Sequence record: MZ475891.1
DNA length: 64,000 nt
Direction: 5' to 3' (one strand)
Part shown: one piece after another, positions 4,947 through 27,909 of the stretch
How positions within the stretch are numbered: the first letter of the stretch is position 1
Layout of the letters: each line of letters starts with the position of its first letter
Position numbers and translations under genes: made by a program
Notes under the pieces: generated by a model
What the model saw: only the letters and a program-made list of their open reading frames with translations
What the model was told of the DNA's origin: nothing
Database searches by the model: none

Positions 4947-5984
4947 TTATTCATCCAATACTCCACTTATATCTTGGAACATGTTTTTATACACAAGGCT
5001 GCCTCCAAGTTTGTCCAGTCGTTCAATCGAAACATACATATGCGGTTCTGTATTCACCTGTGCCCACTTGTTGTCTGTACTCAGGTTTTCCAAAGAAGGA
5101 ATAAGAACAATGCTCAAGTTATCAGAAGCCCTAACGAAAGCCACATCGATATGATTCTTATTGATTCGAATGATGTATCGGTTGATTGCGTCCAAACCAA
5201 CCGTGCGATTGAACTCTACATCACTGACTGTATTCACCAAACTAATAAGGAAGCCTTTCGGGCGACTGTTTATGTCGAACAGCGAACTCTTCAACTCAGA
5301 GAGGGTAGTAGCCGAGAAGTGTTGAACATCATGGCCCTTGCCTCTTAGACACTCACCCAAGATGCGACTCGATTCAATGTGCGCGGTGTTGTCATCACGC
5401 ATGATATAAATCGGTGCACCTCTGTTGTATGTGCGCTCGGTAATCTGCTGTATCAGGTCGCATGTAGGCTCCGTAACAGTAGACAGGCCTTTATACGCAA
5501 TAACAAACTTGTCCTTGTACAGGTCGTAAATCTCAGGCGGCATGTACTTCATGTAATCGTCATCGAGGCTCAAAATCAATCGAGGCTTAACGAGAGGAAT
5601 CACAAGCTGCACAGACCGCAGAGCGTCCTTGTACTCCGTGTCAGATAGCACACGGTTTATAGGTAGGTACTGCACAGTCACATACGGGTCAGAGCCTGTA
5701 TCGACGATAGAGCGAACGGCGGTGCTGCCTACATTAGGACCTGCGGAGAACTGAGTGATAATCATCAAACTGTTCTGGCCTAAGCCCCCGCCACCAGCAA
5801 CTGTAGTAGCACTACCATCTGCATTCTGGACTGTCTTAGAGCGCGTCAGCGTTGGCGCTACTCGGTCGTCTCGTCCGTTATCGGCATATACATTAACTGC
5901 GCAACACCAGAGACAGCTTCCAAGAACGTAAGCAGCAATACGTTGTCGGGATCTGCGTCTGCCGGGTTGACGGTGTCCGGCCAT
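4947..5984 (-). CDS. Periplasmic binding protein type-1 fold (COG2984/ABC substrate-binding-like) with putative signal peptide
   Basis: Motif order SLMIITQFS...VQYLPINR...KPRLILSLDDD...FVIAYKG...IYIMRDD...TTLSELK follows the family pattern as I recall it (VLILxSY...EYMDTKR...PDVIIAxDDxA...VVFxG...I.VLxD...TxxEW); N-terminus RRRSRQR-hydrophobic-VYA|D. Start uncertain (127-nt overlap with 5858..6682). Confidence 0.65.
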   Translation of the reverse strand: MAGHRQPGRRRSRQRIAAYVLGSCLWCCAVNVYADNGRDDRVAPTLTRSKTVQNADGSATTVAGGGGLGQNSLMIITQFSAGPNVGSTAVRSIVDTGSDPYVTVQYLPINRVLSDTEYKDALRSVQLVIPLVKPRLILSLDDDYMKYMPPEIYDLYKDKFVIAYKGLSTVTEPTCDLIQQITERTYNRGAPIYIMRDDNTAHIESSRILGECLRGKGHDVQHFSATTLSELKSSLFDINSRPKGFLISLVNTVSDVEFNRTVGLDAINRYIIRINKNHIDVAFVRASDNLSIVLIPSLENLSTDNKWAQVNTEPHMYVSIERLDKLGGSLVYKNMFQDISGVLDE

Positions 5985-24118: not shown

Positions 24119-24537
24119 TATTGGGCCCTCATGGCAAACGTAACTGACTGCGTGTTTTCCAGTTTAGGACAACGCCAGTTGATGGTACACACATAGGTCT
24201 GATCGTACTGAGCGCTCATACCACACGTTGTCCTTACATCGGTAACGTCATCAGTCAACCCGTTCGCTGGGTCTTCCAGTGCGATACGCATGTAGGTTGC
24301 AATCCACTGCGCGGTCTTATCATCAAACGGTTCGAACAGGTATTGATAGACGTCAGCACCAAACGCTTCACGCCATTTACGTGAACGCTTTCTCGTACCA
24401 ACAACCATCAGAATCTTTTGGACGATGCTGTCCATGTTCTGAACGTTATCGCGAGGCTCAAGATGAATCCACACGTTAACGTCACAGTAAACACGCTCGG
24501 AGACAGGCACGTCAATCAAACGAATAGCGATAGCCAT
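24118..24537 (-). CDS. Baseplate wedge gp25/GpW-like protein
   Basis: GTRKRSRKWREAFGADVYQYLFEP matches the gp25 family T..GER...P.FG..L...LFEP pattern. Confidence 0.8.
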   Translation of the reverse strand: MAIAIRLIDVPVSERVYCDVNVWIHLEPRDNVQNMDSIVQKILMVVGTRKRSRKWREAFGADVYQYLFEPFDDKTAQWIATYMRIALEDPANGLTDDVTDVRTTCGMSAQYDQTYVCTINWRCPKLENTQSVTFAMRAQ

Positions 24538-24827
24538 TAGCCAAATCTCACGTTGTTGCTGCCATTGGATGCGGTGTCATTGCACGTATTAGGATCACCG
24601 TTGCGTTGAGCAGGCTTACCGTTAACACGCACAGTCGAACTGGAAATAGCGTAGCCCACATGCGGTGGTTTCTTAGGTGCTGAGTGTGGCTGATACGCAT
24701 CACCCTGACGCACGCTTCCCTTACCGTTGATCATGACATTGGCTGAGGCTTGTACTGCGACAACAGGATAAAACCCGTTGTGTCCTGTGGACTGGTCTGC
24801 GCCTAACCGAATTGCTTTCTGGCCCAT
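24537..24827 (-). CDS. PAAR-repeat spike-tip protein (T4 gp5.4-like)
   Basis: AIRLGAD..TGH, V.INGK..VR.GD...H, VRVNGKPAQRNGD...C; His/His/His/Cys metal ligands. Confidence 0.9.
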   Translation of the reverse strand: MGQKAIRLGADQSTGHNGFYPVVAVQASANVMINGKGSVRQGDAYQPHSAPKKPPHVGYAISSSTVRVNGKPAQRNGDPNTCNDTASNGSNNVRFG

Positions 24828-24850
24828 TGTTATTCTCCTCTGTTAGGCAC

Positions 24851-24858
24851 AAATTAGC
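24851..24858 (-). promoter_or_regulatory. Candidate late-promoter motif GCTAATTT
   Basis: Exact motif 23 nt upstream of the PAAR start, just after a terminator. Confidence 0.55.
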
Positions 24859-24876
24859 TTTATACGTGACAGAAAC

Positions 24877-24903
24877 AAAAACGGGCAGCCTAATGGCCAC
24901 CCG
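24877..24903 (-). terminator. Rho-independent terminator
   Basis: CGGGTGGCC-ATTA-GGCTGCCCG-TTTTT on the minus strand. Confidence 0.75.
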
Positions 24904-24926
24904 GTTCTTGCGCTTGGATTTTGTCG

Positions 24927-25088
24927 CTATTCCCACATCCCTCGAACGTGTGCCACTGTGCCCTCAAGCACGTAGCCGGAATGAATAGAGGAAGGATAGA
25001 CTGCCTGAGGTCCTTCCTGTAACGATAACAACCGACCAAGCATTGCGATTGCTATCAGCGACAATATGAGCAGTATAATCGTCATCAT
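24927..25088 (-). CDS. 53-aa small membrane protein (absent from the supplied ORF track)
   Basis: Manual translation MMTIILLILSLIAIAMLGRLLSLQEGPQAVYPSSIHSGYVLEGTVAHVRGMWE*; followed by a terminator; weak RBS (AAGAG). Confidence 0.5.
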   Translation of the reverse strand: MMTIILLILSLIAIAMLGRLLSLQEGPQAVYPSSIHSGYVLEGTVAHVRGMWE

Positions 25089-25094
25089 ATCGTC

Positions 25095-26075
25095 GTTACT
25101 CTTCTTTTGGCCGAACGGTATTGCATGGTTTGATCAGATTACTCCGCTGCCTATCGTCCACGATCACTTAGGTTTCAGTTTCTTCATCTCTTTACCGCCT
25201 GCGCTGCGGTCAAGCCGCACACCCTGCACACGAGTCTAACACAAAGGGGCGGAAGAACCTTTATGCTCGAAACATGCACCTGGCGAAGGAGGCCACGCAT
25301 CGGTGATCTGCTGGTGTTAACACACTTTTAAGGCCTTTCTTTTGTGCACCATTCAAGAGACAGGGCCACCAGCTAGTGATCTCTTTAAGGTATTGCACTG
25401 ACTTGTGAACAAGTCACGGGTTGAAAACTATACACTTCCATATGCGCATCGGGAGAAACGCATAAGGCTGATGCACAGCTTTGACTAAGAAGGATTGCGC
25501 CCGTCGCCCGACTTCACTTGGGTATCGACAATCGTTCTCTCTTACTCCCTTGAGCACAGCGCAAGGAACACTGAGTCAATGAGTAGTCTGCGGGTGTTTC
25601 TCACTAGAGGGTGAAAGCCTCTTAGATTCATTATTCTGCACAGCGCCTTAGTGGACTTGAATCGCCCGCTGGAGCATCCAATAAGGCCCTCTCGGTTAGG
25701 CACCTTGCTGCACAGAAAACCCGGGGAGTACGTTACCATATAAAACGACTCTCCCCAATGCATACCAGAGCGACTTGATATGCATCAGGCAGTGAACGTT
25801 TGCAGAAGTTCAACTGCTTTGCTTCCCGCCGAACTAGAGCCACACCGTTGAGTCTACGGTCCACAGTAGTTACATGCCTAGAGGATATTGCCTTGGAGTT
25901 TATGTCCTATGGAATAACCGGGCTCGTCGCGTCGGTGCCACAGCAATATTCTATCATGTGGTGCTGGGGTTGTTCCCCACATTATGCGATTGCTCGCAAC
26001 CAGCTGGAGGTCTGCGTCCGATGAAAAGAATAACTAAGACGCAGATGAGCTTTTCAGAAAAAACGGCACACCAAG
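25095..26075. ncRNA. Candidate large structured non-coding RNA (G-U pairs favour the + strand)
   Basis: ~1 kb with no credible long ORF in an otherwise gap-free genome; more than 12 back-to-back hairpins between 25399 and 26045. Boundaries approximate. Confidence 0.5.
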
Positions 26076-26145
26076 AAAATTGGCTAAACTCAGTGTGCGT
26101 ATAGATATTACTATCTACAATTTTTATTTACAGATTTTTCTGAGA

Positions 26146-27909
26146 TTAGAATGCCTTACGTTCAACATTCGAATAATACGTTTCGTACGGCTCAGAATAC
26201 AACTCAGGACCGCGCTGCGCACGCACAGTAACATAGCCTGTGTGGCGATTCACTGCGGTGATTTCGATAGTAGGCTGTTTAGGCTTAATCGTGCCGTAGA
26301 TAGGCGCGTTCATCGTTGGTGGGTCTGTCTGAATCTTGTTTACAGATTGCAGTGCAGCACCAGACAGCGTAGGGAACTTAAAGCGCAATTCAGCACGCGT
26401 GCGGCCTGTAGCGATCTTGATACTACCAGCAGGCAGTTCAACGCCGCTCTGTTTCAGGTAAGCAGCGATGCGACGACCAATACCCGCCAATTGGTTCTTA
26501 GCGACAGGGTCCATCAGACCATCGAAGCTAATAGCAGCCGGAGGTTGATTCACTGACAGATGCATACCAGTGTTGAAGTAGCCTTCTGCGAGGAAGCGAT
26601 ACAACTGACGAACAATCTCAGGAGTGTTCTGTGCAATCACAGGCGTCAACAACTCAGGTGGGTTGGTCTTCATTGGGTCGCGGTATTCAACCTGACCCTG
26701 CGAGTAACCCATGCTGATATGCTTAACACGAGGATAAGCAGACTGCAATGAACCAGTAGAGCGAATCAGGATAGAGCCAGACTTCGCTTGATCATACAGT
26801 TCATCGCTGGTGGTTGTTGAGAACAGGAAGTAGTCGGTAGGCACAGCCATACGACCGATAGCTTCGATTGCTTTCGTCTGCACTTCTTTGATCGTCGAGC
26901 CGAACACTACACGACTGCGATTAGGCTGAGCAGTAGACACAGCAAAGAATGCACCGTACACTACCTTCTGGTCTTTGACGATAGGCGAAGCAGACTTAAC
27001 CTTTTGACCGCCAGGCAGAGGAGGTAGCTTAACGCCCACCAGCTTGCCTTTAGTGATTGCTTTGTTCGCAACAACAGGCTTCAAGGAAGACAGCAGCTTG
27101 TTCAACTCAGACCCGTCAAGAATCTTCTCCAGCGGAACAACGAGGTTCTGCGGCAGATAGTGTTTCTTGCGCAACGTATAGATAACGGTGTCTTTCTTGA
27201 TCTGTAACGGAGTAGCCATGTTACGACCAGCTTGACCAACAGGCTGGAACGTATTCGCTTTATCCTGCCCAACAGAGCCGAACTCTTTGTCAAACACAGA
27301 CTGACCGATGATGTTCGCTGCACGCAGATGACCACGCACGTTGAACACAATCTTAGGTTCATCTTTCATGCGCAACTCATAGCGGTCACGCGTCAGATAG
27401 ACCATGCTGAACTTGTCGCCTTTCTCCAGCTCAAGGTCATACTCGTCGTTAGCGTCATCGATAACAACTTTCTTACCCTGATAGGTAGCGTACACGCGAG
27501 CGGCAGCAGACTCCGAAGCAATCTTCAACGCTACGCCACAGTTAGACAGCGCGGTAGCATAGTTGGTTGCGTGGAACAGCGCGTCATTCGATTCCGTGAT
27601 AGCGACTTCTTTACCGCGTACACCCAGCGCAAGGTGGATAGCGCTAGAGCTGGACATGAACACAGTGTGACCTGTATCTTCATGCTTACCAGCAAAGGAC
27701 ATACCACTAACACGCGACACAGACAGCGCATTCAGGTGCGGAGTAGTGAACGTATCACCCGCAGCAAAGTCAAAGATTTCACCTTGACGCCACGCGTAAC
27801 CGATGTTGTTTGAACTCAAGCCAACAAACGCATCACCCACCTGTCGAATCGTAGTAGGGATAATGCTGAGATCGCGAACGATCTGATTTTGTTTCTGAAT
27901 GATGGTCAT
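26146..27909 (-). CDS. Putative internal virion protein with the shared ~60-aa domain
   Basis: 587 aa; IASESAAA followed by YATYQG...LEKGDKFSM...RYEL...PKIVFNV, similar to segments of 40618..41295, 49232..50362, 56465..58411. Confidence 0.65.
   Translation of the reverse strand: MTIIQKQNQIVRDLSIIPTTIRQVGDAFVGLSSNNIGYAWRQGEIFDFAAGDTFTTPHLNALSVSRVSGMSFAGKHEDTGHTVFMSSSSAIHLALGVRGKEVAITESNDALFHATNYATALSNCGVALKIASESAAARVYATYQGKKVVIDDANDEYDLELEKGDKFSMVYLTRDRYELRMKDEPKIVFNVRGHLRAANIIGQSVFDKEFGSVGQDKANTFQPVGQAGRNMATPLQIKKDTVIYTLRKKHYLPQNLVVPLEKILDGSELNKLLSSLKPVVANKAITKGKLVGVKLPPLPGGQKVKSASPIVKDQKVVYGAFFAVSTAQPNRSRVVFGSTIKEVQTKAIEAIGRMAVPTDYFLFSTTTSDELYDQAKSGSILIRSTGSLQSAYPRVKHISMGYSQGQVEYRDPMKTNPPELLTPVIAQNTPEIVRQLYRFLAEGYFNTGMHLSVNQPPAAISFDGLMDPVAKNQLAGIGRRIAAYLKQSGVELPAGSIKIATGRTRAELRFKFPTLSGAALQSVNKIQTDPPTMNAPIYGTIKPKQPTIEITAVNRHTGYVTVRAQRGPELYSEPYETYYSNVERKAF

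Follow-up and report, generated by a model that had tools for sequence, protein, structure and literature searches.

A large conserved RNA structure, very probably a new family, beside the baseplate genes of Erwinia, Dickeya and Yersinia jumbo phages

OLE is a large structured RNA with a membrane partner, OapA, and it occurs in Firmicutes chromosomes and is not known from phages. GOLLD and ROOL are large, ornate RNAs that are often carried by prophages and phages and whose function is unknown. Both form RNA-only multimers, as seen by cryo-electron microscopy (bioRxiv 10.1101/2024.12.08.627333). Very few bacterial or phage RNAs above about 500 nt have a well-supported structure, and RNA structural biology has come to concentrate on each of those that do. 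Here we describe a conserved unit of 1265 nt (1208–1309 nt in 13 related genomes) in a 64,000-nt stretch, hereafter the window, of sequence record MZ475891.1. The record is that of Erwinia phage pEa_SNUABM_13, a 265-kb jumbo myovirus of the genus Snuvirus, and window positions are record positions minus 62,000. We hold with high confidence that the conserved RNA structure on the minus strand of this unit is real, and the RNA very probably represents a new family.

A preliminary description of the window had put forward a possibly undescribed large structured non-coding RNA at this place, and that proposal now draws strong support from covariation, from a hold-out test, from pseudoknots and from the lack of any Rfam match. 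Alignment A2 comprises 14 genomes trimmed from an invariant 32-nt box to an intrinsic terminator (26135 to 24871 of the window, minus strand). Covariation, for which the preliminary description had pointed to the homologous regions of related jumbo phages, is found in 122 of the 259 consensus pairs that RNAalifold predicts on A2, each of the 122 carrying at least one compensatory double change. More than 40 helices are conserved in the unit.

To avoid circularity, the structure was also scored on sequences excluded from its derivation. When it was derived from 11 Alexandravirus genomes and applied to the window, 60 of the 81 doubly changed pairs (74%) proved canonical, compared with 29–54% in controls in which the partners were slid by one to three columns. 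The same procedure applied to genome Y3 gave 67%, against 30–49% for the slid controls. Two parts of the structure, domain D1 and module M2, were then represented by Infernal covariance models, R1 (built on D1) and R2 (built on M2 only). In D1, 96.7% of the alignment cells are paired and 20 of the 36 pairs have changed on both sides, where slid controls give 3–6; none of 500 shuffles attained any of the five observed measures. The figures for M2 are 97.1% of cells and 28 of 46 pairs, with 4–8 in slid controls, and again no shuffle among 500 attained the observed values.

The whole unit and its parts, 5′ to 3′ on the minus strand, are as follows:

24871–26135, minus strand: whole conserved unit, made up of the box, a structured non-coding RNA of about 1.05 kb, a small open reading frame (sORF) and the terminator
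26104–26135, minus strand: 32-nt box, beginning 10 nt past the stop codon of the upstream gene; a stem is possible
26066–26098, minus strand: P1 hairpin, with a 6-bp stem in the window; its stem letters vary by lineage and the pairing is kept (alignments A1 and A2)
26011–26049, minus strand: P2 hairpin, 7 of 8 pairs with compensatory changes across genomes
25871–26011, minus strand: domain D1, with 36 pairs and a three-way branch; R1 score in the window 104.8 bits
25833–25871, minus strand: conserved hairpin of 12 pairs, 4 of them covarying
25751–25792, minus strand: highly conserved 15-bp hairpin, with covariation near its tip and a recognisable counterpart in phage Yoloswag
25645–25687, minus strand: hairpin carrying the loop of pseudoknot 1 (PK1), 9 of 10 stem pairs covarying
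loop 25665–25669 with 25590–25594, minus strand: PK1, 5 bp, 100% canonical
25494–25585, minus strand: module M1, paralogue of M2; R2 scores 37.8 bits (E 7e-8); its helices covary
25437–25467, minus strand: conserved hairpin with 6 covarying pairs
25348–25391, minus strand: hairpin carrying the loop of pseudoknot 2 (PK2), 7 of 10 stem pairs covarying
loop 25369–25373 with 25310–25314, minus strand: PK2, 100% canonical; two positions show three and two pair types
25144–25305, minus strand: module M2, 46 pairs, with conserved unpaired tracts; R2 scores 132.7 bits
24927–25088, minus strand: sORF of 53 residues with a single N-terminal hydrophobic helix, unannotated in the record of this phage
24871–24908, minus strand: intrinsic terminator, a 13-bp G+C-rich stem followed by a T-run, its pairing kept through G-C to G-U changes

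The order is thus box, P1, P2, D1, two conserved hairpins together with two that are Snuvirus-specific, a first pseudoknotted unit, three hairpins, a second pseudoknotted unit, a linker, the sORF and the terminator. The first pseudoknotted unit consists of the PK1-loop hairpin, the PK1 partner strand and M1, and the second of the PK2-loop hairpin, the PK2 partner strand and M2. PK1 pairs in three different ways among the genomes, and one of these variants is that of a metagenomic relative (L059) that was not used in defining it. PK2 came to light in a blind search for stacks that covary without belonging to the nested structure. Because R2, a model built on M2 alone, detects M1, the two pseudoknotted units, each of about 200–250 nt, go back to an ancient tandem duplication. 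R2 also finds a second match at the M1-equivalent place in the other genomes of group A, near full length in 10, partial in SNU35 and SNU2 and absent from Y3. More distant relatives (L010, at 5604–5627 and 5866–5889, as well as L013 and L014) carry two copies of a 24-nt motif, apparently the apical hairpin of the duplicated module. The sequences suggest that the duplication is older than the split of these genera.

Several runs of the RNA are conserved in at least 90% of the genomes and predicted to be unpaired, among them GATCACC followed by CCTCCTT (25286–25308) and also GGCGGTAAAG (letters as in the window). The CCTCCTT tract lies in M2, at 25286–25292. Its equivalent is missing in Y3, and a similar tract is kept in JA11 and JA29. 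We take the GATCACC and CCTCCTT tracts to resemble the anti-Shine-Dalgarno end of 16S rRNA.

Most of the stems listed in the preliminary description match conserved helices. Those at 25441–25464, 25466–25480, 25645–25687 with its inner stem, 25758–25785, 25844–25860, 25882–25908/25935–25964, 25965–25979, 25985–25998 and 26011–26045 are all conserved, and the stem at 25399–25416 covaries by eye in A2. Two others, at 25604–25625 and 25789–25817, are Snuvirus-specific insertions; the hairpins concerned, at 25604–25625 and about 25795–25828 on the minus strand, stand in variable regions of the RNA.

The conserved RNA is carried by a clade of jumbo phages of Erwinia, Dickeya and Yersinia. A gap of 1.27–1.46 kb lies at the same place in all examined genomes of Alexandravirus, Snuvirus and Sasquatchvirus. 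Among nine Snuvirus genomes the gap is 98.6–99.1% identical, compared with 97.4–98.1% for the surrounding 12 kb; Alexandravirus copies share 70–93% identity among themselves, and the window copy is 54–62% identical to those of other genera and alignable end to end. At the syntenic place R1 detects D1 with 32.6 bits in L057 (E 8e-6); its scores fall to 14–16 bits in JA11, JA29 and L056. R2 finds the module in a Yersinia phage (26.9 bits) and also in JA11, JA29 and L057. These matches are syntenic in the Salmondvirus-type phages and the Yersinia phage. The group formed by Yoloswag, SNU5 and L054 shares the box, a hairpin, the pseudoknot signature and the duplicated motifs, and its RNA is a probable shorter and rearranged relative. 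In Yersinia phage fHe-Yen9-02 (OR620964.1; L012, L087) the linear record was opened inside the RNA-equivalent interval, about 90 nt beyond the module match.

Scans of IMG/VR and metagenomes, by motif and by neighbouring protein, returned known phages, near-identical contigs, a new full-length lineage (L059), a partial one (L046) and distant relatives, with no occurrence outside the phage clade. In 185,579 bacterial and archaeal genomes the module motif gave 21 matches, against roughly 17 estimated by chance, and R2 confirmed none of them. The locus of the RNA is fixed in these lytic jumbo phages of Erwinia, Dickeya and Yersinia, which can be cultivated, so that its expression, structure and partners are open to direct examination.

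That locus is an interval of 1318 nt, without real ORFs, between genes for a 587-residue protein and a PAAR protein. The preliminary description had placed the non-coding region at 25095–26075 and called it the only large non-coding gap in the window. The gap is real, but those coordinates fall slightly short of the conserved unit, which extends from 26135 to 24871. The three next-largest apparent gaps (about 220–255 nt) each hold a small ORF, so the interval is the sole true non-coding stretch in the window, as had been claimed. Its neighbours are as follows:

26146–27909, minus strand: upstream neighbour, encoding the 587-residue protein with a KMPT-N domain (residues 139–201)
24835–24860, minus strand: 26-nt box directly upstream of the PAAR start codon, ribosome site included
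24537–24827, minus strand: downstream neighbour, encoding the PAAR spike-tip protein and opening the baseplate cluster

KMPT-N is the sole domain of the 587-residue protein, whose PHROG is of unknown function, and its gene lies directly upstream of the RNA in every case, down to 40% protein identity. The PAAR gene is followed by genes for gp25-like and gp6-like wedge proteins and a tail protein. The 26-nt box scarcely varies between genera and has a single copy in the window; a role in controlling the baseplate operon is possible. In AD1, SNU3, SNU33 and L059 an extra ORF of about 40 residues, which the window lacks, stands between the terminator and the PAAR gene.

The interpretation that we favour, with moderate confidence for the whole, is that the minus strand encodes an undescribed family of large structured non-coding RNA whose discrete product acts in trans. 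The 32-nt box would be a dedicated promoter or the 5′ end of the RNA, and a discrete transcript, begun at the box and closed by the terminator, would be the product and would also carry the 53-residue membrane sORF. Such an RNA might act in trans as a folded scaffold or ribonucleoprotein, in which the two homologous pseudoknotted units would fix sequence-invariant unpaired tracts in place for a protein partner or for RNA–RNA contacts, a mode of action that could be likened to that of other large ornate RNAs of bacteria and phages. On the narrower point of whether the element is a discrete trans-acting RNA or ribonucleoprotein rather than a leader, we find ourselves evenly divided. The decoy, sponge, packaging or scaffold roles proposed in the preliminary description are guesses.

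Several points weigh against this interpretation. The alignments were built with MAFFT or fitted to covariance models, and the relatives cluster in a few subclades, so that cell counts overstate the number of independent events. Single-sequence folding of the 981-nt region gives −300.1 kcal/mol on the plus strand (z = −0.48) and −322.4 kcal/mol on the minus strand (z = −1.49), neither of which is significant against shuffles, and folding energy in sliding 200-nt windows is only mildly below that of the coding flanks. An excess of hairpins over chance, as first perceived, is therefore not upheld and, because single-sequence thermodynamics is not significant, the evidence for structure is the comparative evidence of covariation. 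A simple sigma-70 promoter scan did not flag the 32-nt box. In the Yoloswag, SNU5 and L054 group the models score 7–11 bits only, and homology there is argued from these weak scores together with the shared motifs. A catalogue published in 2023, with about 10,000 candidate structured RNAs drawn from IMG/VR, could include pieces of the RNA (PMC10690425). Transcription itself, and the ends of the transcript, we infer from the sequence. Finally, no terminator lies between the RNA and the sORF within the unit, which leaves room for a role as a leader.

In that role the RNA would be a giant cis-acting 5′ untranslated region of 1 kb, controlling either translation of the sORF or transcription past the terminator into the baseplate cluster with its PAAR gene. 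This possibility, already raised in the preliminary description, is a minority rival that we think unlikely yet worth serious attention, given the conserved sORF and terminator that follow the RNA; a function as an mRNA leader alone is less likely than the interpretation above. The RNA, the sORF and the terminator do lie in one unit. The sORF is intact in 14 of 14 genomes (47–53 residues) and preceded in most by an AGGAG-type ribosome site, and this site region falls within a predicted helix, although one with little covariation. The N-terminal hydrophobic helix is conserved and the tail is variable. At the protein level the sORF resembles small ORFs of Yoloswag, SNU5 and JA11, its C-terminal octapeptide being identical in the window, Yoloswag and SNU5; some relatives have it annotated (as gp112 in SNU17, for example), and it has no Pfam or PHROG family. 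Its codon periodicity is weak and covarying helices run on through it, so that the segment may serve as both coding sequence and RNA structure. In Yoloswag, moreover, another small gene has its start codon exactly where the RNA ends.

On the other hand, known leaders fall far short of over 40 helices with a pair of pseudoknots and a module in duplicate, and the CCTCCTT tract shows no covariation with the sORF ribosome site: the window and SNU3 lack AGGAG and keep the tract, and Y3 shows the reverse. The RNA and the sORF are also separable. Three to seven small genes stand between them in Yoloswag and SNU5, and in Yoloswag the sORF has a box of its own, a second copy directly before it, in addition to a terminator between the upstream gene and the first box. 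In group-A genomes the box is invariant save for single substitutions, with G-U in its stem in the window and G-C in relatives. The window has one copy of it, as does each genome of the clade, Yoloswag with its two copies apart, and a core of the box follows the stop codon of the 587-residue gene in five of five distant relatives. The box was considered as a general phage promoter and rejected, being single-copy per genome with an 8- and 9-nt core found once in 64 kb. Searches of the region for tandem repeats, other repeats and simple promoters yielded the terminator as the only informative element. The simplest reading of the box is a dedicated promoter or 5′-end element able to drive the RNA and the sORF separately. 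On that reading the RNA would be more than a leader of the sORF.

A bolder version of the trans-acting interpretation, to which we give little credence, would see in this RNA the founder of a new class of giant phage RNAs, pseudoknotted and duplicated within, that serve as an RNA machine or decoy in host takeover. The unpaired tract resembling the 16S rRNA 3′ end (25286–25308) might capture a host translation or RNA-processing factor. Alternatively, the RNA might self-assemble into a cage that the co-encoded 53-residue protein would tether to the membrane.

Much less probable than a leader is a functional DNA element, that is, a replication origin, a packaging site or a protein-binding control region with DNA hairpins. 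Phages often have origins or packaging sites in their large non-coding regions, the invariant box has the look of a site recognised by a protein, and the fHe-Yen9-02 record was opened inside the equivalent interval. However, the predicted pairs comprise 558 G-U cells but only 44 A-C cells, and the consensus energies differ by 119 kcal/mol between strands, an asymmetry not expected of DNA hairpins. The pseudoknots covary, and a terminator closes the unit. No iterons, tandem repeats, AT-rich unwinding region or turn in GC skew were found, which disfavours the structured origin that had been offered as an alternative.

Structured RNA on the plus strand, antisense to the genes, is more doubtful still. 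Helices can form on either strand, the single plus-strand sequence folds to −300 kcal/mol, and the preliminary description had judged that G-U pairs made the stems fit the plus strand better. The z-score of that fold is nevertheless −0.48, and RNAalifold, run on a 13-genome alignment, predicts 307 pairs at −283.8 kcal/mol for the minus strand, compared with 227 pairs at a much weaker −165.2 kcal/mol for the reverse complement, so the claimed preference is refuted. Some of the G-U pairs are invariant in A2. R1 and R2 match the minus strand only, and no terminator-like site was found on the plus strand within the unit. Consensus energy, the excess of G-U over A-C cells, the minus-only model matches and the minus-strand terminator therefore place the RNA in sense with the genes, every one of which lies on the minus strand throughout the window. 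A GNRA loop on the minus strand, which the preliminary description had counted as evidence against its own choice, pointed in the right direction.

We give almost no weight to the idea that the interval is a decayed gene or a string of tiny genes whose conservation is coding. Minus-strand ORFs of 34–73 residues do tile the region, and small ORFs are annotated in some records (SNU17, SNU35, SNU32 and SNU22). Substitutions, however, show no codon periodicity anywhere from 26145 to about 25100: the three-base periodicity score is 1.0–1.4 in the gap and 3–7 in the flanking genes. Mean pairwise mismatch in the gap is 0.23–0.36, compared with 0.37–0.53 in the flanks at whichever codon position varies most. 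With no codon periodicity and slower change than at third codon positions, the gap is non-coding yet constrained. In a six-frame comparison between genomes, peptide matches were spread over several frames and the two strands, the pattern of conserved nucleotides rather than of coding sequence; the sORF was the exception and alone behaved like a gene. The length of the interval is kept across genera, contrary to decay. RefSeq records also annotate opposite-strand hypothetical proteins within the RNA (L002 3436–3585, L009 1846–2007, L015 2400–2543 and L016 1953–2429, plus strand of the locus), which are probably spurious given the absence of codon periodicity. The annotation is corrected here on two counts, the spurious small ORFs on the RNA in several records and the 53-residue sORF missing from the record of this phage.

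Equally hard to credit is a diverged member of GOLLD, ROOL, OLE, the group I or II introns, RNase P RNA or tmRNA. The RNA falls in a similar size class, and GOLLD and ROOL are also phage-borne, but Rfam 15 has no match at the gathering threshold in the 64-kb window, a lax search found nothing relevant in the region (to E = 10) or in 11 relatives (to E = 5), and ARAGORN found no tRNA or tmRNA in 64 kb. Among the Rfam models without a match in the window are GOLLD, ROOL, OLE, raiA and HEARO. Group I and II introns, RNase P RNA, tmRNA, 6S and SRP RNA were considered as candidates and rejected, having no Rfam or ARAGORN match, and the flanking 587-residue and PAAR genes are both complete and uninterrupted; the preliminary description had likewise recognised no tRNA, tmRNA, RNase P or intron core. 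A literature search found no paper on an RNA at this locus.

The jumbo-phage RNA nevertheless shares features with several described systems. Like long structured leaders of the riboswitch or attenuator type, it lies upstream of an ORF and ends in an intrinsic terminator, but it is several times larger and more complex and is separable from the sORF in related phages. Like sponges of the CsrB/RsmB type, it has repeated structural units that display conserved unpaired sequence. Those sponges, however, repeat short hairpins, whereas here there are just two pseudoknotted domains of 200–250 nt, without an array of GGA loops (a handful of conserved GGA sites are seen by eye in A2) and without an Rfam match. 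The likeness to OLE is one of arrangement only, a small membrane protein gene immediately after a large structured RNA in one unit; no Rfam OLE match was found, and the sORF encodes one helix and has no Pfam or PHROG family. By analogy, the arrangement suggests a membrane-associated ribonucleoprotein.

In type the RNA is akin to GOLLD and ROOL, which likewise measure from hundreds of nucleotides to about 1 kb, have many covarying helices and pseudoknots, are phage-borne and have no obligatory coding partner. The jumbo-phage RNA differs from them in matching no Rfam model and in having no tRNA gene in the window, whereas GOLLD and ROOL are frequently adjacent to tRNA genes. It also differs in its setting, a fixed locus between the KMPT-N gene and the baseplate cluster of lytic jumbo myoviruses of Enterobacterales. 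Its comparative support is unusually clear, and its modular construction from two homologous pseudoknotted units, an internal tandem duplication, is specific to it.

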